In this document: in pieces, positions 843 to 14,809 of the stretch
Layout of the letters: each line of letters opens with the position of its first letter
How positions within the stretch are numbered: position 1 is the first letter of the stretch
Assembly: GCA_000320545.1 (NCBI GenBank)
Contig: ADNK01002131.1
Span: 58,219 to 122,218, forward strand
DNA length: 64,000 bases
Direction of reading: 5' to 3'
DNA from: Bigelowiella natans CCMP2755
Lineage: Eukaryota; Protista; Cercozoa
Position numbers and translations under genes: made by a program
Notes under the pieces: model-generated
Seen by the model: only the letters and a program-made list of their open reading frames with translations
The model's database searches: none
Told to the model about the DNA's origin: nothing

Positions 843-1875
843 GAAAATAATAATGTCAAACCGAATGCAACGATGGTGGCAGCGGTAACAGTGATGACAC
901 AAAGGGAAGACAAGGTAGAAGAGACGGCCGGGAACATGGCGAACAATGAACCTCACAAAATGTCCCCACTCGATAAAAGAGAAATGAATGAACATGAGGT
1001 CAATTTTAACCATAATCAACAGGAATGTCTAGATAGCACTTTCTCCTTTGTTTCACATTTTTCGCCCAGACAAGCTTCATCGAGATACATCATCATTGCT
1101 GGGTCATCATGTGCAACAGCGCAAATTGAATCATGTCACCAACATGTGAGCGATGCGCAGTACCATCTCCTGCGGAATGGCTTCAAAGCTGGACATGGCT
1201 TGGACATCAAAACATTTCGATCCTGTTTGCTCTTCCAGCAAATCTTGGTTCTTCAGCAAGTCTTGCTAGTTGGTTCGATCGATTCTTCACAAAAAACTTT
1301 CCATCCAGCTGAGCTGACACAATTTGGGTGCTCGTTTCAGGGCAACGGTTTGGTCTTTCCAGCACTGCAGCAAGTGTGGACTGTGGACACAGTGTGCATC
1401 ACATGTGTGTCATGTGCATCACACATGCGCATGTCTGTTGTCATGCACACCCTTCAAAGCATTCAAATGGGCGTCTCTGTGCTGCACGATTTGCTCCGCA
1501 TCACTCCCGTTGCATGGACATGGTCACGCAGAACTGTTCATCACAGAGCATGACACTTTCACATGTGACATTTGTCTGTGCATGGCTTCATGGTGTCACA
1601 TCAATGCCTCAGTCCAATGACACCCATCGCTTGCATTTCATGCACACTGAACGTGTGTGCTTGGCAAGGCCCTGCATGACCCTGCGTGGGCATGTGGTTG
1701 TTGCACATGCCATCAATGTCAGGCATGCATGTGTTCTTGAAGCATTTGACATCTGTGTTGTTGCTGTCAGCATCACCTAGTTGAAGCCGCATTGTCGCAC
1801 ACTGCTCCCTCTGTGCAAACAATGCCATTCCACTCACTCAGACTCCTCCACGGCCTCAAATCACATCGATTGCAC

Positions 1876-2115
1876 TGCCTCCCTTCACGAATTGTGTTCC
1901 TGCAGGCTCAACGATCGTGCTGCCTCCCTTCATGAATTGCATTCCTGCAGGCTTGTCGATTCTGCTGCCTCCCTTTGTTTCATCGTGAAGAGAACAGGGA
2001 GCTGTGATTGCAACAGAAGCCAGGAAGCATCGCAGAACTGCACCGGATGATTCATTGTGAAGAGAACAAGGAGCTGTGATTGCAACAGAAGCCAGGAAGC
2101 ACGAGGAAACTGCAC
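1876..2115. repeat. Tandem repeats: 45-bp unit x2 (1876-1965) and 72-bp unit x2 (1979-2115)
   Basis: tgcctcccttcaYgaattg..ttcctgcaggct.. at 1876 and 1921; ttcatYgtgaagagaaca..gagctgtgattgcaacagaagccaggaagca at 1979 and 2051. Confidence 0.9.
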
Positions 2116-2917
2116 CTGCAGTTGCATTGCGCAGCGCTGACAACACAACTGTGCAATTGTTGGAGGGCTGGGTGCGGTGCGATGTGCGCGCAGTGAGCAA
2201 AAGCTAGCAAACGAGCAGGTGGCGGTGTTCAGGTTGAACTGTGAGGTCATCATGCGAGGGTTGACCGCCCTCTGACAAGTGTCAAGCTTGTCATCAGTCA
2301 CATGCAATTGCATTGGGTTTCTGGGCCGCGACAAGGCTAGCAAGTTCAAGAACTTTGTGCAACTGAAGCCAATCAACGTGAGCGACTTGTTCAAACCCGA
2401 ACAAAAAAGGTTCATCAGTGGAACGTGCGAGTTCAAGGTCGATTCAAAGGCACGATTGAAGTGCAGTGACAAAAGAAACCGAGAGTGCAAATCTGACGGA
2501 AATGAAACTTGCAAATTGACGCGCATGTCCATTGGCTTCCCCTTGCTTCAGTGGGCGATCAAACAGTGCCATCTGCATTGTCACAGACATGTGATGCCAT
2601 GTGTGCACCACACGTGATGTTGCTGTGTCCATCACAAGTGCAAGCCCTTTTTTGGCCCCGAGCAACAGTCCTTCTTCACCTCACATGCCCCAAATGTGCC
2701 TTCTCCATGTCACAAGTTGTCATTTCTGTGTCTTTTGTTGTGCATGCAGCAACTGGCAGCGATGCGCAAATGCAATGCAAACTTGATGAAGCGCTTCATT
2801 TCAAACACCTTGCAAAAGACATGGCTTTTCATTTCAGCATTGTGTGTGCAGATTGCAAGCCTACGATGCATGCGCATTCTCAAAGGGACACTTGTTTCAT
2901 GCACACCGTGTCTCGCG

Positions 2918-3487
2918 TCATTTGAATTTCATGATGCAATGTGCACAGAGGTTGATGTCAAGCGTGATGAGGACAAATTGTTCAGAATTTGCATCTGCAC
3001 TTTCAGTTTGCCATCTGTCATCAAAAACTCTCCCAAGATCCATGGCCTTCTCTTTTGTCATGATTTCTTTTGTCGCAAAGAGACAAACCATGGTCTCATG
3101 TCCATTGTCCTCATCATCGTGTTCAAAACATGGTTCGCATGTCTTTTTTTTGAATCTCCGTGATTGAGCTTCAGATGAAGATTTGTGAGTCTGGGCATGA
3201 TGCAAATGCTTCTCGAGTTCATCAGGTAGCACATGCTTGATCTCTTCTTCTTTGGTGGTGTTTTCAGTTGATCCAGATCCTTTCAGCACAGGCCTCACCG
3301 GCGCTTGTGTACGAAGCCTTTTGCGACGGACCTCTTCTGCAAATTGGTCAATGGTTTTGTTCTCTTCCTCGTCCTCACTGTCACTGTCATCACTGCTCGC
3401 AAGGTCGATCACAGTTTTTTCTTCAATTTTCCACGGCGGGCAAACGTCTGGAACTTGGCAGGCTTTTCTTTTCCTGGACATTGGCAT
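2918..3487 (-). pseudogene. Tyr-free acidic/basic ORF relic inside block 1, family unknown
   Basis: 189-aa ORF with NLS-like (RKRK, RRKRLR) and acidic tracts, no Tyr, ending in TGA. It lies in TA-erased DNA, so its length may be inflated by lost stop codons. Confidence 0.3.
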
Positions 3488-3611
3488 GTTTTAGAGGTTG
3501 GTTGGGCAGGTGAGGGGTTTGAGTTGTGAGGACTTTGGTTGAAGAGGAAGTGAGGGGCCGAGCCTTGGATTTCAACAGAACAAACCACGTGGCCTTTGAC
3601 CAGTGTTCTCA

Positions 3612-3765
3612 ATGTGCCACGTGGTGGACCCCGGCAAAGCCATGTGGTGCACTCACCTGGACTTCTCAATGAGCCACGTGGCTGACCCAGGAAATGCCAT
3701 GTGGTACACTCACTTTGACTTCTCTGTGAGCCACGTGGCTGACCCAGGAAAAGCCATGTAGACAC
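3612..3765. repeat. 57-bp tandem repeat, about 3 units
   Basis: gccacgtggYKgacccMggMaaWgccatgtggtRcactcac repeated with period 57. Confidence 0.9.
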
Positions 3766-4469
3766 GTCAAAAATGAGCCCAATGCAAAGCCACGTGGCCT
3801 GCATCAGGAGCGACATTGGATGGAAGCACGCTGATGATTTCTTGACTACACTGAGTGACGCAGCGACGCGCGATTGATGCCAAACCATTGAATGTTGCGC
3901 CAAGACAATGCAGCGTCATTCAAAGCTGTGCTGCGCAGCGCTGCGCTGCAATGTGGCATGTGCTTGCCATGGGCATGAAGTGCAAAAGAAAATGAGCGTG
4001 ATGAACAGCACAACGTTTTGCGCAAACCCAACATTTTTCAGTCCATTTGTTTGCAAATTGTCAATTCGAACTCCCGTTACAGGCCATCCCGTCAACCCAG
4101 AGTCACCATCAACTTCGAGCATTTTTCTCAAACGAATCTGTCTCTTTGTTTGCAACTGTTCCCGCCGTTTTTTCTCTGCTGCGTCTTCTTGAGGGGGGGG
4201 AGGGAGGGGGGCATCCTCATCTTCCTCTTTTCCCTCCTTGTCTTCACCCCCTTCTTCCTCCTCATCATCCTCTTTTTCTTCCTCCATGTCTTGAGGGGGG
4301 GGAGGGAGGGGGGCCTCCTCATCATCCTCTTTTTCTGACAATGCAGAACATCCGTTTAATTAGCGGACACTTGTTATAGACACGTAATACCACATATGTA
4401 CTGTACATGATATTACTATGTCCATCATTGTATGCAACTTGACTCTTGTATTCATGTATCCCTTTTCCC

Positions 4470-5263: not shown

Positions 5264-7150
5264 TCATTTTTCCTTATTGTGGCCCCAAGCAACCATGGAT
5301 GATCGCATGGATGATCGCATGTCTGTCATCTCGGCACTAGATGCCAACGGCAAGCTTCCGGCACTAGATGCTGCGACCTCATGGACGGCGCCATGAATCC
5401 GCTTTCGTCGGGACGCTAGCCAAAACCAGAGTGCTAAGCAAGCAGCAGTGCCCACCAGGAGAGTGACAATGATGATGACTAGGCCGCTGCTATCGGCGCT
5501 TGCTCCTTTGGCTTCTTGCACATTATCATGCACTACAGCGACAGGAGAAGAAGGCGAAGTAGTGCCTGGATGAGCAGTAGGAGACCCTGTAGGAAGCAAT
5601 GTAGGCGCTAGTGACCTGGACGAAGGCGACGTGGTCGGTGAGGCTGTAGGGAGCGACGTGGTCGGTGATGCGGTGGTAGGGAGAGTCGGCGCAAGGGTGG
5701 CAGGCGAGACACTAGGATTTGCAGTCAATGGATGCGCTGTGGCTGGGTTCAGCGTAGGATTCAGTGTCGCGGGGCAGACTGTGGAGGGGGAAACCGTCGA
5801 TGGCGTCAGAGTCGGGTTTACTGTGGGATTGTTTGTCGGTGCTGCTGTTGTTTCCGGCCGCGTGGTGATGCCTAGCAAGGTCACGCCGTTCTGACTTGGA
5901 AGGCAGATGGCATCGGTTGCATTGACAGCGAAGCAGTCCGAAAACCAATATCTATTAGCTTGGTAATATGCCCAGGGAATCGTAATTATCCCCGTGGAGT
6001 TCCTTACGGTATCGATGTACATGGCCTCATAGGCAGGTTGATAGTTTGGCGAGCAAACAATGGTCGTGTTTAGAGCGACACATCCAAAATTGGGAGGAGA
6101 AGGTTGCCTCCCAAAATAGTGCCGATTGGTAAAGCCACCAGCTAGAAAGGACACTGCGTAGCTTGAATCTATTCTCAATACCACGTGTTGGTAAGAACTT
6201 CTTGGAGGACACCACATCGTGTTGCCCACAGTCACACAGGCTAGAAAACACGAACCTCGAGCCAGAGTGCCAAATTGGCCTATAAAAGAGTACGAGGTGG
6301 ACGTCATTGACATTCGAATAATACGGGGCCACCTATTAATGCTGTAGGTGCATGGCGCACAGACCAGGTCCGAAGACAAAATCCCACACCCTTGATAATA
6401 TTCGGAATGATACAGGTCGGTTGTGTAGCCATTCTCTATAGCAGTGCTTGGTATTTGGGTCTGCGTGTCGAAGTTGAGGAACGTATATGAAGGAATCCCC
6501 CCTCCCATTCTATTCTGGTCAATAGGCGCGCACTTGATGTATCGTCCGCCCATGTATGCACAATGACCAAAGTCGCCACCGCTAGCGTATGTGCTCCCAA
6601 CAAATTGGTGCCCATGACTTGTTACCTTCAGAACTTGGTTTCCCCCTGTTGCAGTGATGCAGTAAACAGGATCCAAAACTGAGTCGCCGGTTGGCACGCA
6701 GTGCCCAGCATAGTCCTTGTGTAACGTGCCAGTGCCATGTGTGGACACGACGCTCGCTCCGACTGAGACTTTGAAGATCCGTACTGGGTTCTGGTACGAT
6801 GAGTATTGGCCGAAGAAATACAAGACTCCCGCACGGACGAAGACCATTGGCATCCCTTTTTTTAAGATGCCAACGGCGGGTTGGAGGAAAGTCGCGGTCG
6901 TGTTTGTATCCTCTGCGTTCCGCACAAATCTGACGATGAGGATCTCCTGTAGACTCACCTTATGGAAGCAGTAGGTGACGCCGTTCGGGCCCGTGCTAAC
7001 CGAGTAGCAGTCTCCATCAATCATACCAGTACCCACAAAAATCGTTGAGTTGCCCATCGCGGCGTATGCATGAGGCGGGAGGTTCGTTGCAGTAGCATTA
7101 ATCAGTTGAATGACAAAGAGAGAGACGCCTAGAGCCCAAACCATCGGCAT
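5264..7150 (-). CDS. Intronless type I membrane protein (about 628 aa): signal peptide, Cys-containing propeller-like repeats, Thr/Pro/Ser stalk, TM helix, short tail
   Basis: Likely start MPMVWALGVSLFVIQLINATA at 7150. About six repeats of the form (F/Y)xxC..x..C(P)...vlxiD, e.g. FLACVTVGNTMWCPPRSSYQHVVLRID. Stalk of PTxxP repeats; TM GLVIIIVTLLVGTAACLALWFWLA followed by SRRKR; TGA at 5264. Confidence 0.85.
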   Translation of the reverse strand: MPMVWALGVSLFVIQLINATATNLPPHAYAAMGNSTIFVGTGMIDGDCYSVSTGPNGVTYCFHKVSLQEILIVRFVRNAEDTNTTATFLQPAVGILKKGMPMVFVRAGVLYFFGQYSSYQNPVRIFKVSVGASVVSTHGTGTLHKDYAGHCVPTGDSVLDPVYCITATGGNQVLKVTSHGHQFVGSTYASGGDFGHCAYMGGRYIKCAPIDQNRMGGGIPSYTFLNFDTQTQIPSTAIENGYTTDLYHSEYYQGCGILSSDLVCAPCTYSINRWPRIIRMSMTSTSYSFIGQFGTLARGSCFLACVTVGNTMWCPPRSSYQHVVLRIDSSYAVSFLAGGFTNRHYFGRQPSPPNFGCVALNTTIVCSPNYQPAYEAMYIDTVRNSTGIITIPWAYYQANRYWFSDCFAVNATDAICLPSQNGVTLLGITTRPETTAAPTNNPTVNPTLTPSTVSPSTVCPATLNPTLNPATAHPLTANPSVSPATLAPTLPTTASPTTSLPTASPTTSPSSRSLAPTLLPTGSPTAHPGTTSPSSPVAVVHDNVQEAKGASADSSGLVIIIVTLLVGTAACLALWFWLASRRKRIHGAVHEVAASSAGSLPLASSAEMTDMRSSMRSSMVAWGHNKEK

Positions 7151-7200
7151 AATATATATTGAATAATCGGCAACGTCCCAATTCTTCTTGCGTCTGAACA

Positions 7201-7515
7201 AACAATGAATAATGAACAATGAATAAAGCATTGATCAAATCTACATGGGCCAGAACCACATGGGAGACAGGCGTATACATGCAGCAGCGCCTCAACAAAA
7301 ATTATTGCGAGGACTTGTCAGCACCCTCTTGGTGATGAGTAGTAAAACAACTAAAGAATAGTGAACAATGAATAATGAATAATGAATGATGAACAAAGCA
7401 TTGATCAAATTTACATGTGCGAGAACCACATGGGAGACAAGCGTATACATGTAACAGAGCCTCAACAACAGTCGTTGCAAGGACTTGTCAGCACCCTGTT
7501 GGTGATGAGTTGCAC
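7201..7515. repeat. Two tandem copies (period about 170 bp) of a module directly upstream of the membrane-protein gene
   Basis: aatgaa..aaagcattgatcaaat.tacatg.gc.agaaccacatgggagaca.gcgtatacatg...gcctcaaca...ggacttgtcagcaccct.ttggtgatgagt at about 7201-7330 and 7370-7510. Confidence 0.9.
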
Positions 7516-8176
7516 AACTAGCAAGAAACGATGCTAGTTTTTGCTGTCGCATTCTGTAGAACAAGGAGAATTTAGGTAGGACGACAACCCAATCTGGGGA
7601 TGATGTCTAAGAAACAACACATGCATGTGTGTAGTTCCTAATGTAGTTCCCAATGCACATGGTTTCGTTCTTAATGTAGTTGGATGCGGGGTGGGCGAAA
7701 CTGCCGAATGTGAACAGCATCAAGATGCTAGTTTTTGCTGTCGCATTCTGCAGAATGAGGAGAATTTAGGTGGAGATCTTGGACCAACAAATTTGACAAC
7801 AAAAGACAATTCTTTCAAAGCGACATTGAAAAAAATGCATGATTTCACGATGTTGGCTCAAAATGGCCCTTGCTTCCATTGAAAGTACCAATTTCACACA
7901 CTGTTTGTCGCAACTAAAGATTTCCATGTGTCAAAAGCAATTTCATGTGAAACAGTTTGGTTTCAATTCACATGAATGGAAATGGTTGGTTTTTGATTCA
8001 CATGAATGCAAGAAGTTTTGCTTCTCATGGACAGATTTGCAGCGAGCGAGTCTCTCGAGTTGCACCCTGTCAAGAGTAGCTCCTCCCCCTCCCTTCCCCC
8101 CCCGCCTTCCGCCTACCTCTGTCACTATCCCTGCGAACCCACACTCTTGGTTGCTAGACTTCCCTGTCGGTGCGTG

Positions 8177-10496
8177 ATGTCTCATGCTGACCCTGACGAA
8201 ACAGTTGTGGCCTCACCGGAGTCGCACGAGTTGGGACATTCCGGACCTGCCGAACTCTCAACCGTCACCTCCCAAGAGTCAGGAACCCCCGGACTTCGCA
8301 AACACTTCGATCTCAACGATGCACCTGGACCTCTAGCCGCCCTCCACCTCAGGGAAGGTGTTGACGATGCCCCTCCTGATGTTTCGACACGCATGATTTC
8401 ATCGTGGACCGATGACATTTCAGCTGGCCAGGTCATCGGTTTGCATCACGGAACACAATGGTGCGTGGGGAAAGTCATGTCAGTCAACCAGGATGCGGGG
8501 AATGCGGAATTTGACTGGGCCGATTGCAGGTCATCCTCGGATCACACGGGCGTGAGTGACTGTGGTGACAGTCCTGCTTTTGAACATCTTCCGATGTCCT
8601 CAGCTGTTGATGGCGGTGAAGACAAAGCCAAGATTGCTTTCCACTCGCCCCGGGGGAAATCTGCATGGGATGGCATTCCCATGGCCACACGAGAAGATCC
8701 TGGAGGTCTGAAACGAAAAATTTCAGAGCAAATCAGGCCACTGATGACAACTCGCACCGCAGAACCAGAAAGGAAGTTGGCGACCCCAACTGCTGCAAGT
8801 GTCGCCTCGGCTGAAACCATTCTTCGGAGCAACTGGATTCTCAGCAACGCGCTCACCGACCATCCCAACTCTGGAGAGGGCAACGAGGTGGACACCGAAA
8901 TTGCAGATGCAATCAAGGGTGAAATTCGTGATGTCGACAGTGCTTCACCCAGCCTTCACAAACTGCACGCCCGGAGGCCTCACATCGAGAGAATGTTGAA
9001 AGCCTTGCACCTCCCACACTGCATGAGCCCCACCGGTGAGGCCAAGGATGACTCAGAAACGCCAATGGAAGCAAACTCCGCCCCTTCCAGGTGCCCAGTT
9101 GCCATGGACTCAAAGGAATTCATGGGGATGGAGTCAGAAAGGCGATGGCTACGCATGTTGGATTGTGTCTCAGCGGTTTGTGAAAAAAATGCACGGCTCA
9201 CTGAAGCGCTAGCATCAATGAAGGCCAAGATCAACAGCCAAGCGGAGGAAATTGAAGTGTCACAGCAAGATTGCACCCGCAGGAGAAACCACCGGAGACT
9301 TGGGGAAGCTCCTCCTTCGGTTGCTGCCCCCTCCTCAGAGATTCCACTCATTTCCAAGCTGAACAATGGCAAGGGGAGATTCCGCCCCATGCGTGCCAAC
9401 CCTCCAGGGAATGGAGACTGCTTGAAAGTGATCCTCATGCTTGGGAAACAAGCCCTCACCGAGAGAGCTGATGGTCACATCGCCTGGAATCAGGAGGGGG
9501 GACTTCTGCGATGAGCTGCAGCAGGAACTTCTCAAATGGTGCGAGGAGTCGAGCGAAGAGGTGAAAGAAACGGTGGAATGCACGGAGCATCAAACCTTCA
9601 AAGCTTGGGCACAGTGCTTGGTTGAACTGCGCCAACACTTTGGGGACAGTGAGATCCTGCTCTTCTCAAAAATTGCCAACATTGAGTGCATGGTGATGAC
9701 AAAAACGGGCGCGCGTGCACGTGCACACCGAGGGGACAGGCCGTGCGCACGCCTGTGCTTCTTCTGCGAAACAAATGCCGACGGCGAAGGGAAGATCACG
9801 GGCCACCACCAACCACTCTTTGTCAAACGTGGCCGCTCGGCTGAACTTCTGTTCAACCCGAAAGACCCTCAACTTGAGCTGGTGGAGCAGGCAGCACAGC
9901 CAAAATCTGAGGACCAGCTCTCAGATGAGTTCTGTGCAGCAGACAAAGATGCACGGAGGATCATCCGGGGTCGTCTCTCACAAATCAGGAAGAACCCAGG
10001 TGTTGCACCTCAATGCATGCCCCCCTTCCCTCAGAAAGAGACAGAAGGTTCCTCAAAGGCTGGTCACAATTCAAGCCCGAAGAAGAAGAAGAAAAAAACG
10101 AAGAAGATGACGAAGCAGCATTGGTCCCACAGCCCCCCGCACGCTGCGCACGCTGCTTCTGCTCACATCCGCTCAGAACCTGCCATGGCACGTGCAATGA
10201 CCGTCCCTTCTTCATCAGTCCGCAGGGCGCTCGTCATCTTCACCAACGGCACTGCAGCACAAACTGAGAAGAAACTCGATGAAAGTGTTCCAGCGCTGTC
10301 CAAACACATTGCGACCTTCACTCGAATGAAGAACAAACTGAACGATGGCCACCGCATCATCGTTGTGGCCAATGACGATGCTGGATTGCGGGCGCTTCAT
10401 GACAGTGTCTCGGAGATCGCCAACATGGGGATGAAAGTTGCCAAGTGGCTCCCCGTGGGGAAGCGTCACGGCGGGGGGTCCTGCAACAAAGAGTGA
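8177..10496 (+). pseudogene. ORF1-like relic of a non-LTR retrotransposon with an OTU-like cysteine protease domain; frameshift near the G-run at about 9496-9501
   Basis: PPGNGDCL (OTU Cys loop) at the end of ORF 8006-9514 continues in the next frame with FGDSEILLFSK (WGGxxEL-like) and ITGHHQPL (GHY-like His motif). The C-terminal RALVIFTNG...GHRIIVVAN segment may be RRM-like (inference). Confidence 0.6.
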
Positions 10497-10552
10497 CGGT
10501 GAAGAAACGGCGTGGGAGGCGGGCCATTCTTTCCCTCCTTCGCCAACCACGC

Positions 10553-11338
10553 ATGCACCCCAACCCCTTTTTCAAAGTTGCATGGTGGAACGTCAGAGGC
10601 CTCAATGGCAAAGTGGCTCTTTCTCACAAACTCACTTTGGACGAGAAATTGGATGTTCTTTTTTTGGTGGACACCCAATTCCCTTTGAACAAAACAGCAG
10701 CACCAAAAACCCACCAATGGACCCCATTCCCCACTGCCTTTTCCGGCCCGCACGACTCCAAGCGCGGGATGGGAATGCTCCACAAATCAAAAGCCTCCAT
10801 TGTCCAGGCAGGCCTTCACGATGTCTGGATTGCAGCAGAGGCATCAACACCGATCCTCCTGCATGCTGCTCACTGGCCATGTGCGGGAGACCCTCTGCAC
10901 GACCAAGCACGCAACGAATTCACGGTTTCGGCTCGCGCCGTGATGCCCCACCACAAGTCAGTTCTGTCGGCAGGAGATTTCAACGCTCGTCTCTCCTCCG
11001 ACAGGGACACAACAACCAATCCCCAGGGTTCCAAGGTGCTGGAGGCTGCCTCTGCCCTGGGCCTTCTTCACTGGGATGTGGACCTCAATGTTTTGTGCGG
11101 CCCGTGCTCCAGAGAAGTGGAACTTGAATCGCCGACTGGCACCATCATGCAGCGGTCCACGCCAGATCACGGCTTCTGCAACGAAGCTGCTGCACTCATC
11201 ACATCAGACACCCACGTTTCCCCACACAACTGCCTCAGCGACCACCGCCCCTTGGTGGCTTCCCCAGCTGTGACAGCCTCCCCCAACCTCCATCTCGTTT
11301 CGGGGTCGTGGGACAACACCATCAAAATTTGGCGATGA
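10553..11338 (+). mobile_element. 5' part of LINE-like ORF2: apurinic-type endonuclease (EEP/APE) domain, truncated before any RT domain
   Basis: Canonical APE motifs in order: WNVRGLN, LDVLFLVDT, AAHWP (YxP), AGDFNAR, STPDH (DY), SDHRPL. Directly follows ORF1 as in LINEs. Confidence 0.85.
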
Positions 11339-11858
11339 ATGAATGGGTGGTGTCTTGAGCAGCTGATGCAAGTGGTGAGATGGTGAAAGGAAATGGCAGG
11401 AGGGTGGAGAGGACGGAACGGGATCAGAAGGAAGATGAAAGGAGGAACGGAACAAAGTGCATGGGTGTCGTCATGCAGTGCCATGCAGTTTGGAGATGAG
11501 ATTCGTTGGTCAGCGTCACCTAGCTTGCCAACTAGTTTGGACCGACGAACTGCTTTGATGGGGTCCACCCGCGCGCATGAGGATGGTTGGGGTCAGGGGG
11601 AAAGGGAAAATTCAATCAACAACACTTTGAATCAGAGTCCTCCATCCAACGTTCCTGGAATCACTTGAGAAATGATGGGGACATGGATGGATGGGATGCG
11701 AATTGCCAGCAGCAACAATGACTTTGAGAGTCGCTCTGCGTCACCACAGCTGTTGGTTTCCATCCTGCGTGTGCGTCCACGTGTCGTGCATGCATGTGGT
11801 CATTTCACTGACTTGCAGACAGCACGCAGCGCACGTTCCGCACAATGCAAGCCGCGCA

Positions 11859-12375
11859 GGAATTCCTTGACGGTCAAAGCGGTGCACACGTGTGTTGTTG
11901 ACATGTGCAAAATCTTCGAGATCTCTGAGAGGTTTTGACTTGGATGATGGTGACATCTGACACACGTGTGCCGTTTTGACGGTCAAAGCGGTGTTTTTGA
12001 AAAATTTCAAGATTTTCGATGGCAAGTCTTCTGATGGGAGAAAAAAATGAAGTGCAAAGTGCAAGGTGCAAGGTGCATGTGTGAGAACTGTGTGCATCAT
12101 CATTTTTTTTCAAACGTGAAGTGTGAAAACATGTGCACAATGCAAACATGCATGTGCATGTGTGCACCTTGCACCTTGCACTTTGCACTTCATTTTTTTC
12201 TCCCATCAGAAGACTTGCCCTCGAAAATCTTGAAAACTTTCAAAAACACTGCTTTGACCGTCAAAACGGTGCATGCATGTCAGATGTCACCATCATCCAA
12301 GTCAAAACCTCTCAGAGATCTCGAAGATTTTGCACGTGTCACACGTGTGCATCGCTTTGATCGTCAAGGAATTCC
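11859..12375. mobile_element. Fold-back MITE-like element with about 215-bp terminal inverted repeats and internal direct repeats
   Basis: ggaattccttgacg at 11859 is the reverse complement of cgtcaaggaattcc ending at 12375. Arms are highly similar over about 215 bp. ttgacggtcaaagcggtg occurs twice per arm. Flanked by ca on both sides. Confidence 0.85.
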
Positions 12376-14809
12376 CACGCGAACACGATCCACTTTCCTT
12401 GAACTGGAGATGTGGGGAACATGGAGGATCATTGTGCAAATTGTTCGGATTTCATTGAGTCCAAAGGCTGACGTGGAGGAACATCAGAATGTTTCGACAT
12501 CTTGATCCCGACCACCCGGCGACCAAAAACACGTTGACATTGCACGTTCACAGAGAATGCAATGTCAGAATGATTCAATGATGCCTCATCAAAGAGTGTC
12601 AGTGAGCATCGAGTAGCTGTTGGCTTTGTTTGCATGAAAATGACGGCTGGTAGAAAGTGCGTGCCATTGCGGACAACTGCAATCATTGCGTCGTGTGCGC
12701 CAGAACACGTTTGCGTCATTGTTTGGCTGGATTTGGGGAAATGTGGGATGATTGTTTGCATGGTGAATGACAGAGCAATCCTGACTGTGTGACTGTGGAC
12801 ACAGTGCATGTCATGCACGTGTCATGCACATCACACGTGCGCATGTCCATTGTGTGGCTGACCGTCACCACCTTCGAATTCATGGTGATCGTCGAATTGT
12901 TTCCAAATCATGGTGCCCAAGCAGAATTCTGTTCAATGTCAGAGTCTCTTTCTTGCTGGGACAGCAAGTGATCGATTTCCTCACCACATTGCATCCGACA
13001 CAGTCTGACAACTTCTCCTGATGAGCAGCACGTGGCACACCAATTGGGAGCCGCCCATCACCGCATCATGATTTCTGTCGATGACATGCTTCCGCCCAAA
13101 TCATGGCACATCTAGACATGCTTCTTGGTGGTTCTGGCTTCAACTTTGCGGCCAATTTGAACCCAATCACGATCATTCAATGTTTGAAACAATGCACTCA
13201 TTCTGGGGATGGGAGTTGTGAATTCAATTCATTCAATGGGATGCATCGGAACACTGCTAGACTGGTGACTGCAAAATTTTTCTGGGCTGCATGGAGACAA
13301 GCTAGCAAGTTGCGACGATTTCAGGGGCTGCTGTCTTCTGTTGCAATTGCTTCCCACCACCAATGAGACTCAGAGTGCTTCTTCTCAGAAGCAATCGCAA
13401 CGTCATGAGGAAAGATGCTTTGCAAGATGTGCCACGAAAACCACAACGAAAAACTGGAAGTTCAAGTGCAAGCACGGGAACAATTGGCGTCAGTGTTCCA
13501 AGAAATATCATCGAGTTTGAGGCAAGAAACGAAGCCAAATTGTGGACAGAAAGTCCAATTCAAGAGTCACCGCTGCATCCAAGATTCCAAACAGAAGGAA
13601 ATGGGGGAGAAGACAAGACGACACGCAAATTGTTTCTTTCAATTTGGACCTCCGCAACGATGGCCATTGCGGCCATTTTCAACTTTGGGCATCTAGCACA
13701 CTTCCAATTCCAGGATCCAGACCGATCTCATGCAGACCAAGCTGGCAAGCCCAGTTTCGACAATCGCGAGGAGAGCACCAAGCTAGCAAGGAAGCCCAGA
13801 ACGTTTTGCCAATGTTGTTTCTCTTTTGGGTGCTGTCTCAGCTGGCGGTGCCTGCATGACCTTGTGCACAACACCGGCTTCAAATGCAGCACGCGCATTC
13901 ATGCTCAATCAATGTTGTTGCTGCTGCAATTTTCAAAACACTCCACTAGCTAGCTAGCTTCATCGAAGAACTTGATTTTGGAGAAAGACAAACAGTGCGG
14001 TCATTCAGTTGTCATTTGACATGAATCAGCTCAAAAGCAAGTTTCCAAAGCTAGAAAGGCAAGAACTGAAAAAGACCAAAGCATGATTGCCAGATTGGCC
14101 AACGTCAAAATTGTCAAAATTGCAAAAGGGTGCCTCCAGACCTTGCTCCTCACTGCTAGCTAGCTAGACTGTGGCGCTACTAGGCTAGCATGTGACACCA
14201 TTGTTGCAATTGCAGTGCTTGCGTTTGCCAGTTTGGTGTGTAGTCTCTCGCTTGCTGCAATGAGAAATCTCCATTTTTGTTCATTTGACAATTGATTTTT
14301 CAAATGAAAATGTCTAGACTAGATCTGCTGTTTGTCAATCATCCAAAAGTGTGTTTCGCGTTCAATTTGGAAATCATCACATGCAACAGCTAGATCTAGA
14401 GATGTAGCGAAAAGGTTAGACTCACATTGCACACGCACCCAGCTAGCCAGCGAAACAAACGCGAGCGACAATGCTAGATTGCAAACTGAAAATGACACAA
14501 AATTTATCAATTGGTACCAAATTAATTGTGCTTGATTGGAAGTATCTCAAACAAATTCGAGTAGCTGCCCTCGCGTGCACAAGTTCCACATTTCGTACGC
14601 GACACGTGTGATTAACTCATGCTAAACTAGTAATATTTGATTCAGAGTGTTGCTGAATTGCTGCAAATATCATCTCTAAATGTAAAAGTAAGCACAATGA
14701 GCGTTTTGGATGTAATACTTCCCAGGTTTTACGGATTTCAGTGAACTATTTGAAAAATCTATACCACCGATCACAGTACCAGAGTACCACCAATGTTTCT
14801 CATAGAAGA

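Follow-up and report, generated by a model that had tools for sequence, protein, structure and literature searches.

A Tyr-free non-LTR retrotransposon remnant in a TpA-depleted block of Bigelowiella natans and the direction of change from TpA to CpA and TpG

Introduction

Hypermutation of TpA to TpG or CpA in integrated viral and other foreign DNA was described for Bigelowiella natans in a preprint by Mettrop et al. (bioRxiv 10.64898/2026.01.13.699255). The present study concerns a stretch of 64,000 nt of B. natans CCMP2755 (contig ADNK01002131.1, positions 58,219 to 122,218; the whole stretch is referred to as the window) and, within it, a remnant of a non-LTR (long terminal repeat) retrotransposon from which TpA, and with it every tyrosine codon, is absent. 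In the mutation-accumulation lines of the preprint, two regions of integrated viral DNA had 231 mutations, of which 230 were A>G or T>C, all of them on TpA according to the text; they arose in situ, in viral DNA integrated as a single copy, and were seen in Illumina data as heritable de novo changes. In the B. natans genome, 124 TpA-depleted, CpA+TpG-enriched clusters were reported (at least three 1-kb windows, rho TpA ≤0.43, CpA+TpG ≥1.52), and domains of the reverse transcriptase, endonuclease-reverse transcriptase and DDE types were over-represented among TpA-poor coding sequences. Deamination of adenine in DNA by an ADAT2-like protein, with Bn78255 named as the candidate, was proposed, not shown, by the authors of the preprint, whose main text makes no mention of amino acid consequences or tyrosine, of CTAG, or of flanking context.

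An earlier reading of the window (the original prediction) had proposed that His and Cys stand at conserved Tyr positions in 9400–11260, and that these residues are products of A>G at TpA on either strand and not of CpG decay. The four strings on which it was built are present: GHH at 9801–9809 (frame 0), and GMGMLHK at 10766–10786, AAHWP at 10865–10879 and STPDH at 11156–11170 (frame 2). The observation was confirmed in part and its interpretation is supported in part, with the central thesis holding, as described below.

Results

Segment 9400–11260 (1861 nt) contains no TpA, with ~90 expected from base composition or ~70 from the background rho of 0.78; the rho values of TG and CA are 1.54 and 1.33. 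The segment lies within a larger TpA-free block, and the window holds a second such block (Table 1). TpA rho is 0.0–0.13 in six consecutive 1-kb windows (8001–14000) and 0.05–0.12 in 1001–4000, well within the limit used in the preprint. Mean TG/CA rho amounts to 1.54–1.80 in 11001–14000 and to 1.59–1.94 in 1001–4000; in 8001–11000 it is 1.35–1.44, under the cut-off of 1.52 as measured here. In block 7780–14000, a deficit of ~260 TA and ~90 CG stands against a surplus of ~310 TG+CA, so that the loss of TA explains most of the surplus. The depletion is found in every frame, on either strand and in the non-coding flanks, its borders are sharp, and the two strands are about equally affected (TG and CA are both in surplus). 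Across the entire window, which is eukaryotic, microsatellite-rich and of ~46% G+C, TpA is mildly under-represented (rho 0.67). The CpG rho is 0.5–0.78 inside the TpA-free blocks (1001–4000, 8001–14000) versus ~0.9 elsewhere in the window; given this lowered CpG, the blocks may also be cytosine-methylated.

Where TA is lacking, no TAY codon can be formed in any frame, and the loss of Tyr is thus forced. TAA and TAG are lost by the same token, TGA remains as the sole stop, and 81 overlapping open reading frames (ORFs) of at least 40 aa are therefore found in all six frames within the 7 kb of 7000–14000. Since stop loss opens all frames, the length of an ORF in this block is no evidence for a gene.

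By sequence comparison, 8633–11257 is what remains of a dead non-LTR retrotransposon, namely its 5′ part, consisting of ORF1 with an OTU-like domain and of the APE endonuclease, with the reverse transcriptase (RT) lost: the segment is collinear with an intact relative (contig L001), it carries one frameshift, and the RT is gone. The ORF1-like part shifts from frame 2 to frame 0 near 9500 and ends with a TGA stop at 10494–10496. The endonuclease label of the original prediction proved sound (E 1e-38 to an APE-RT ORF2): in HMMER, the APE piece gave matches down to E 2e-38, including proteins with APE and RVT_1, and the catalytic motifs (WWN..., DTQ, GDFN, SDH) are present in the alignment, with the Tyr of YWP replaced by His. 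With Pfam, a weak Exo_endo_phos match was obtained (E 7e-4, under the gathering score). An RT was not found downstream in the same ORF; homology ends at 11257, just past the SDH motif, where a WD40-like fragment follows. Being frameshifted and truncated, the element is under no selection.

The WD40-like fragment (SGSWDNTIKIW, 11290–11338; Pfam WD40 E 7e-5), located 3′ of the truncated endonuclease, is itself TpA-free, which means that the erasure extends past the retrotransposon. Block 7780–14000 as a whole spans the LINE fragment, this WD40-like fragment and an inverted-repeat element, and reaches ~14000.

Searched exhaustively with HMMER, the APE piece returned 17 relatives. Tyr is entirely absent in two of them, P0001 (an MMETSP transcript, 65% identity) and P0002/L004 (a JGI transcript, TpA rho 0.20); the remaining relatives have a normal Tyr content. 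Both TpA-free relatives come from transcript assemblies made on independent data, and an assembly artefact is therefore not the cause. P0003 was located on contigs L001/L002 as an intact element (TpA rho 0.63) with an ORF1 of 641 aa and an ORF2 of 1189 aa that carries APE and RVT_1; among the intact relatives, TpA rho is 0.56–0.73 and Tyr makes up 2–3%. One relative alone bears a species name, that of the chlorarachniophyte Chlorarachnion reptans. A homologous-protein search with the APE piece gave P0001 as the sole match; the same search with the 351-aa ORF, or with the ORF1 of L001, gave no match. A metagenome scan with two APE alignments confirmed no relative, as the first alignment was too divergent and the second gave pattern matches.

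For the APE domain, the three TpA-free copies (window, P0001, L004) were aligned with 14 Tyr-containing relatives. At the YWP column, the window reads AAHWP, and the expected xxYxP was borne out in every Tyr-containing relative. The Tyr codon is TAT in L001, TAC in L003 and TAC in L005; the TpA-free copies have CAC in the window, His in P0001 (protein only) and TGC (Cys) in L004. Two further APE columns and the GHH motif of ORF1 show the same replacement (Table 1). The reading of GHH as a former GHY also stands, in that the position is aromatic and is Tyr in the nearest relative. Arg occurs in no relative at the YWP, YNVW, Y-x-W or GHY columns, which excludes CpG decay from CGY there. STPDH was not a replaced DY motif, as had been assumed: four Tyr-containing relatives have PDH with CAC, and DY is confined to distant relatives. 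Close relatives with His at the very same position were thus found for PDH and not for YWP. The proposal for GMGMLHK held for one residue at most. Its first Met and its His are common to Tyr-containing relatives (L005 RGMGILHR, P0006); the second Met possibly arose by ATA>ATG, a change that is unprovable.

Table 1. Coordinates of the features in the window
Feature	Position	Strand	Remarks
TpA-free block	7780..14000		22 TA in 6.2 kb, rho 0.06; TG rho 1.58, CA rho 1.45
Second TpA-free block	1001..4000		rho TA 0.09, TG 1.69, CA 1.87
ORF1-like part, non-LTR retrotransposon	8633..10496	+	collinear with L001 ORF1 residues 13-630 (tblastn E 1e-39)
OTU-like domain	9308..9899	+	Cys motif PGNGDCL near 9395 (frame 2); His motif TGHHQ 9798-9812 (frame 0)
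GHH of the ORF1 His motif, CAC (His)	9807..9809	+	closest intact relative L001 GHY (TAC); L006, L008 GHF (Phe)
APE-type endonuclease domain of ORF2	10535..11257	+	37% identity to L001 ORF2 residues 1-247 (tblastn E 1e-38)
Y-x-W column, CAC (His)	10712..10714	+	Tyr in 7/13 Tyr-containing relatives (TAC/TAT in L001, L003, L005); L004 Phe
ATG GGA ATG of GMGM	10769..10777	+	first Met common to Tyr-containing relatives; second Met opposite I, V or A
Y-N-V-W column, CAC (His)	10817..10819	+	Tyr in 8/13 relatives; His in all three TpA-free copies
AAHWP His, CAC	10871..10873	+	Tyr in 14/14 Tyr-containing relatives
STPDH His, CAC	11168..11170	+	ancestral in subfamily: L001, L003, P0004, P0009 all PDH; not a mutated Tyr
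Inverted repeat	11899..12341		arms 179 nt, 94% complementary; inside block 7780-14000
Repeat copy (63 nt)	12791..12853	+	partner 1379-1441 in the other TpA-free block
Repeat partner copy	1379..1441	+	pairs with 12791-12853

The direction of change was also read at the DNA level from repeats. The two copies of the 63-nt repeat differ by 14 mismatches, 12 of which form six CA/TG double discordances; with simulated random transitions, a mean of 1.1 double discordances was obtained, and six were reached in 0 of 20000 simulations. Likewise, four of the 10 mismatches between the arms of the inverted repeat make up two CA/TG double discordances. Such discordances would be expected if an ancestral TA had been resolved separately in each copy, to CA in one and to TG in the other, and no protein alignment is needed to see them. 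The tandem pair at 7190–7530, at the block border, has too few informative differences for polarising.

At conserved columns, the changes expected from an in-codon TA (Y>H/C, I>M/T, V>A, L>S/P) were counted in both directions. Forward:reverse ratios of 5:0, 7:0 and 4:0 were obtained for the TpA-free copies (sum 16:0), versus 23:23 in the 14 controls (Fisher p 2e-4; p 4e-4 with the PDH column removed). Counted by alignment cell, the window copy gave 102:20 versus ~1:1 in the controls, and 67:20 with Tyr removed. Its composition (Tyr 0%, His 4.7%, Ala 10.5%, Ile 4.0%) is shifted as predicted, with His, Ala, Pro and Met raised and Ile and Leu lowered, and TCA accounts for 40% of the four-fold Ser codons versus 19–21% in relatives. 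That His and Cys at the conserved Tyr columns are TA>CA and TA>TG products, and not the outcome of CpG decay, is borne out by these counts (16:0 versus 23:23), by TAY, never Arg, in the relatives and by the repeat discordances.

Few TpA survive: 13 of the 22 remaining TA in block 7780–14000 are CTAG, and the 34 remaining in 1100–4050 and 7780–14000 together comprise 17 CTAG, 9 GTAG/CTAC, 4 GTAC and 4 with an A or T flank. For comparison, Table S2 of the preprint (bioRxiv 10.64898/2026.01.13.699255) was tallied here; 206 of its 211 mutations on scaffold 10 are TpA mutations, and the base 3′ of the mutated A is A in 67, T in 67, C in 52 and G in 20 of these 206. TAG is thus the least-hit context in Table S2 and CTAG makes up half of the survivors in the two blocks, which fits the same process. 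Four T>C entries of Table S2 lie off TpA (context ATG three times, ATT once); in the text of the preprint, all mutations but one are placed on TpA. In L004 (1–2851; JGI 3300017173 transcript, rho 0.20), TA is kept almost only as TTAA, TTAG/CTAA and CTAG (YTAR), unlike the rule in the window. The difference may point to a sister lineage whose enzyme is tuned in another way; L004 may stem from a different species, or the specificity of the enzyme may be a different one.

The OTU label given to the ORF1 domain is only weakly supported. The catalytic Cys motif is GDCL in the window and in L001 and GGGNCFYHA in L006, and a C-terminal His is followed by an aromatic residue in the relatives. L006, which reads GGGNCFYHA ... 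EWGG ... NGHFELL, has OTU as its sole Pfam match (E 0.19, 12.7 bits, cut-off 23.3); neither the pieces from the window nor the intact ORF1 of L001 matched Pfam OTU (PF02338). AlphaFold models of the domain were poor (pLDDT 38 and 44, one with a 3-row alignment), and the six best Foldseek matches of the low-confidence L001-domain model were all OTU domains (E 0.03–0.1, TM ~0.2). Neither the APE piece nor the OTU-like domain gave a useful match in searches of PDB sequences. OTU-like cysteine proteases are carried by non-LTR retrotransposons and by other transposons, for example Helentrons (PMC4067079) and Ginger DNA transposons (PMC2836005); the window has in common with these a transposable element protein with OTU-type Cys and His motifs, adjoining an APE endonuclease, and differs in that the OTU-like domain is placed at the end of ORF1 of a LINE-like element.

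Further observations were made on individual relatives. P0007 (an ENA metagenome protein) has two Tyr only, with His at two of three conserved Tyr columns and the Tyr of YWP kept, and may be a partly hypermutated copy. In the called protein P0001, the reading passes into a different frame of its own copy; gene models are unreliable within TpA-free blocks. L001, L002, L005 and L008 (Logan SRR29340314, SRR29340316, SRR29340323) are elements of the same superfamily that are intact and contain Tyr, on near-identical contigs from three neighbouring run accessions, and these runs appear to be separate libraries from a single organism.

Discussion

It is considered very likely that the segment is the dead 5′ part of a retrotransposon inside a block hypermutated at TpA by a process of the B. 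natans type. Transitions on both strands would have converted nearly every TpA of the 6-kb block to CpA or TpG. As Tyr is coded by TAY only, each Tyr codon would have become CAY (His) or TGY (Cys), and the TAA and TAG stops would have been lost with them, leaving long spurious ORFs in six frames. The present data establish the erasure of TpA, the homology to the retrotransposon, the replacement of Tyr by His or Cys at conserved columns and the direction of change. From these we infer that the process is the one seen in the B. natans lines, in which foreign or mobile DNA is hypermutated regionally and specifically at TpA; an ADAT2-like enzyme that deaminates adenine in DNA would be the candidate.

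The window and the described system have in common the dinucleotide target, a transition-only outcome on both strands, blocks on the kilobase scale, and RT or endonuclease-RT sequences as those hit. Mobile DNA is present in the block as the non-LTR retrotransposon fragment and the inverted-repeat element, and the direction TA>TG/CA on both strands is seen in TAY of the relatives versus CAC/TGC, in the double discordances and in the surplus of TG and CA. G+C content and background TpA frequency of the window also match the B. natans values. The block differs in being far more complete (rho 0.0–0.1) than the active nucleocytoplasmic large DNA virus region of the preprint (rho 0.45; bioRxiv 10.64898/2026.01.13.699255). 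It is at most a tentative suggestion that the process acts on chromatin-like blocks rather than on individual elements and follows a flank rule that the main text of the preprint does not mention.

Several points weigh against this reading. P0001 is a relative of the window copy, with 65% identity, and the His residues that the two share are hence not independent events. At 23–37% identity to the relatives, most single substitutions cannot be polarised and the non-Tyr classes form a trend only. Among the non-Tyr columns, the exact NCA product codon was found in one of six; L>S/P and V>A were rejected as clean evidence for this reason, so that the excess of directional changes expected in the original prediction is clear for Y>H/C and not clean for I>M/T, V>A and L>S/P. 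The window also contains several long intronless ORFs, which is unusual for the intron-rich B. natans, and the paper that supports the hypermutation is a preprint.

Other origins of the His and Cys residues were weighed against the same data. If methylated CpG had decayed to TpG/CpA, His and Cys would stem from Arg CGY codons; CpG rho is indeed lower in the blocks than outside, and some contribution to the TG/CA surplus is probable, but such decay is unable to remove TpA, the relatives carry TAY and never Arg at the YWP, YNVW and GHY columns, and the CA/TG double discordances require an ancestral TA, so that we regard it as highly improbable as the source of the replacements. Very improbable, too, is editing of a retrotransposon transcript by an ADAR-like enzyme followed by reverse transcription into the genome. 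A 5′ U is favoured by ADARs, the element is a retrotransposon and the TpA-free copies are transcribed, all of which would suit such editing; yet strand-specific A>G limited to the element boundaries was not seen, since both strands are about equally affected and the block reaches beyond the element, over the WD40-like fragment and the inverted repeat. TAG is spared here, whereas ADARs prefer a 3′ G. The mutations of B. natans, moreover, occur in situ, where the viral DNA is integrated as a single copy (bioRxiv 10.64898/2026.01.13.699255). Animal ADAR and APOBEC editing of retroelements is similar in leaving deaminase-type transitions on retroelement copies, ADARs sharing the preference for 5′ U/T; its marks lie on one strand and do not leave the element, whereas here both strands and the flanks are hit.

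The family might also avoid TpA by itself, by selection for UpA-poor codon usage or by ancestral composition, with His and Cys as its normal residues. PDH, which is ancestral in the subfamily, and the mildly low TpA throughout the window are in line with this; intact relatives with normal TpA and 2–3% Tyr, a depletion that ignores frame, strand and coding status and ends at sharp borders, and an element too damaged to be selected are not, and it can be given hardly any credence. The least credible origin, a sequencing or assembly artefact in which a modified base at TpA in silenced DNA is misread, would suit the sharp borders in so far as modification is linked to chromatin. The independent MMETSP and JGI transcript assemblies, however, encode the same Tyr-free proteins, heritable de novo changes were recorded in Illumina mutation-accumulation data (bioRxiv 10.64898/2026.01.13.699255), and paralogous copies differ by CA/TG, which a systematic miscall would not give. 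Fungal repeat-induced point mutation (RIP) resembles the window in that mobile or repeated DNA is hypermutated regionally, by transitions at a specific dinucleotide, and its coding capacity is destroyed. It differs in that CpA is changed to TpA (C>T), raising AT content and stops, whereas here TpA is the substrate, GC goes up and TAA/TAG are lost; its signature, a TpA surplus from C>T at CpA, was not found, TpA being absent and CpA/TpG in surplus.

Conclusion

TpA hypermutation of the B. natans type thus accounts best for the window. The mechanism is already known, and the present finding corroborates the 2026 description for B. natans, providing an independent confirmation, from sequence only, of the direction of a eukaryotic TpA to TpG/CpA hypermutation. 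For annotation, it means that gene finders call long false ORFs in hypermutated DNA and that profiles of the Pfam type score the remnants poorly. If the block-level reading is true, the combination of zero Tyr with high His/Cys would serve as an annotation-free marker for hypermutated genes in protist transcriptomes.

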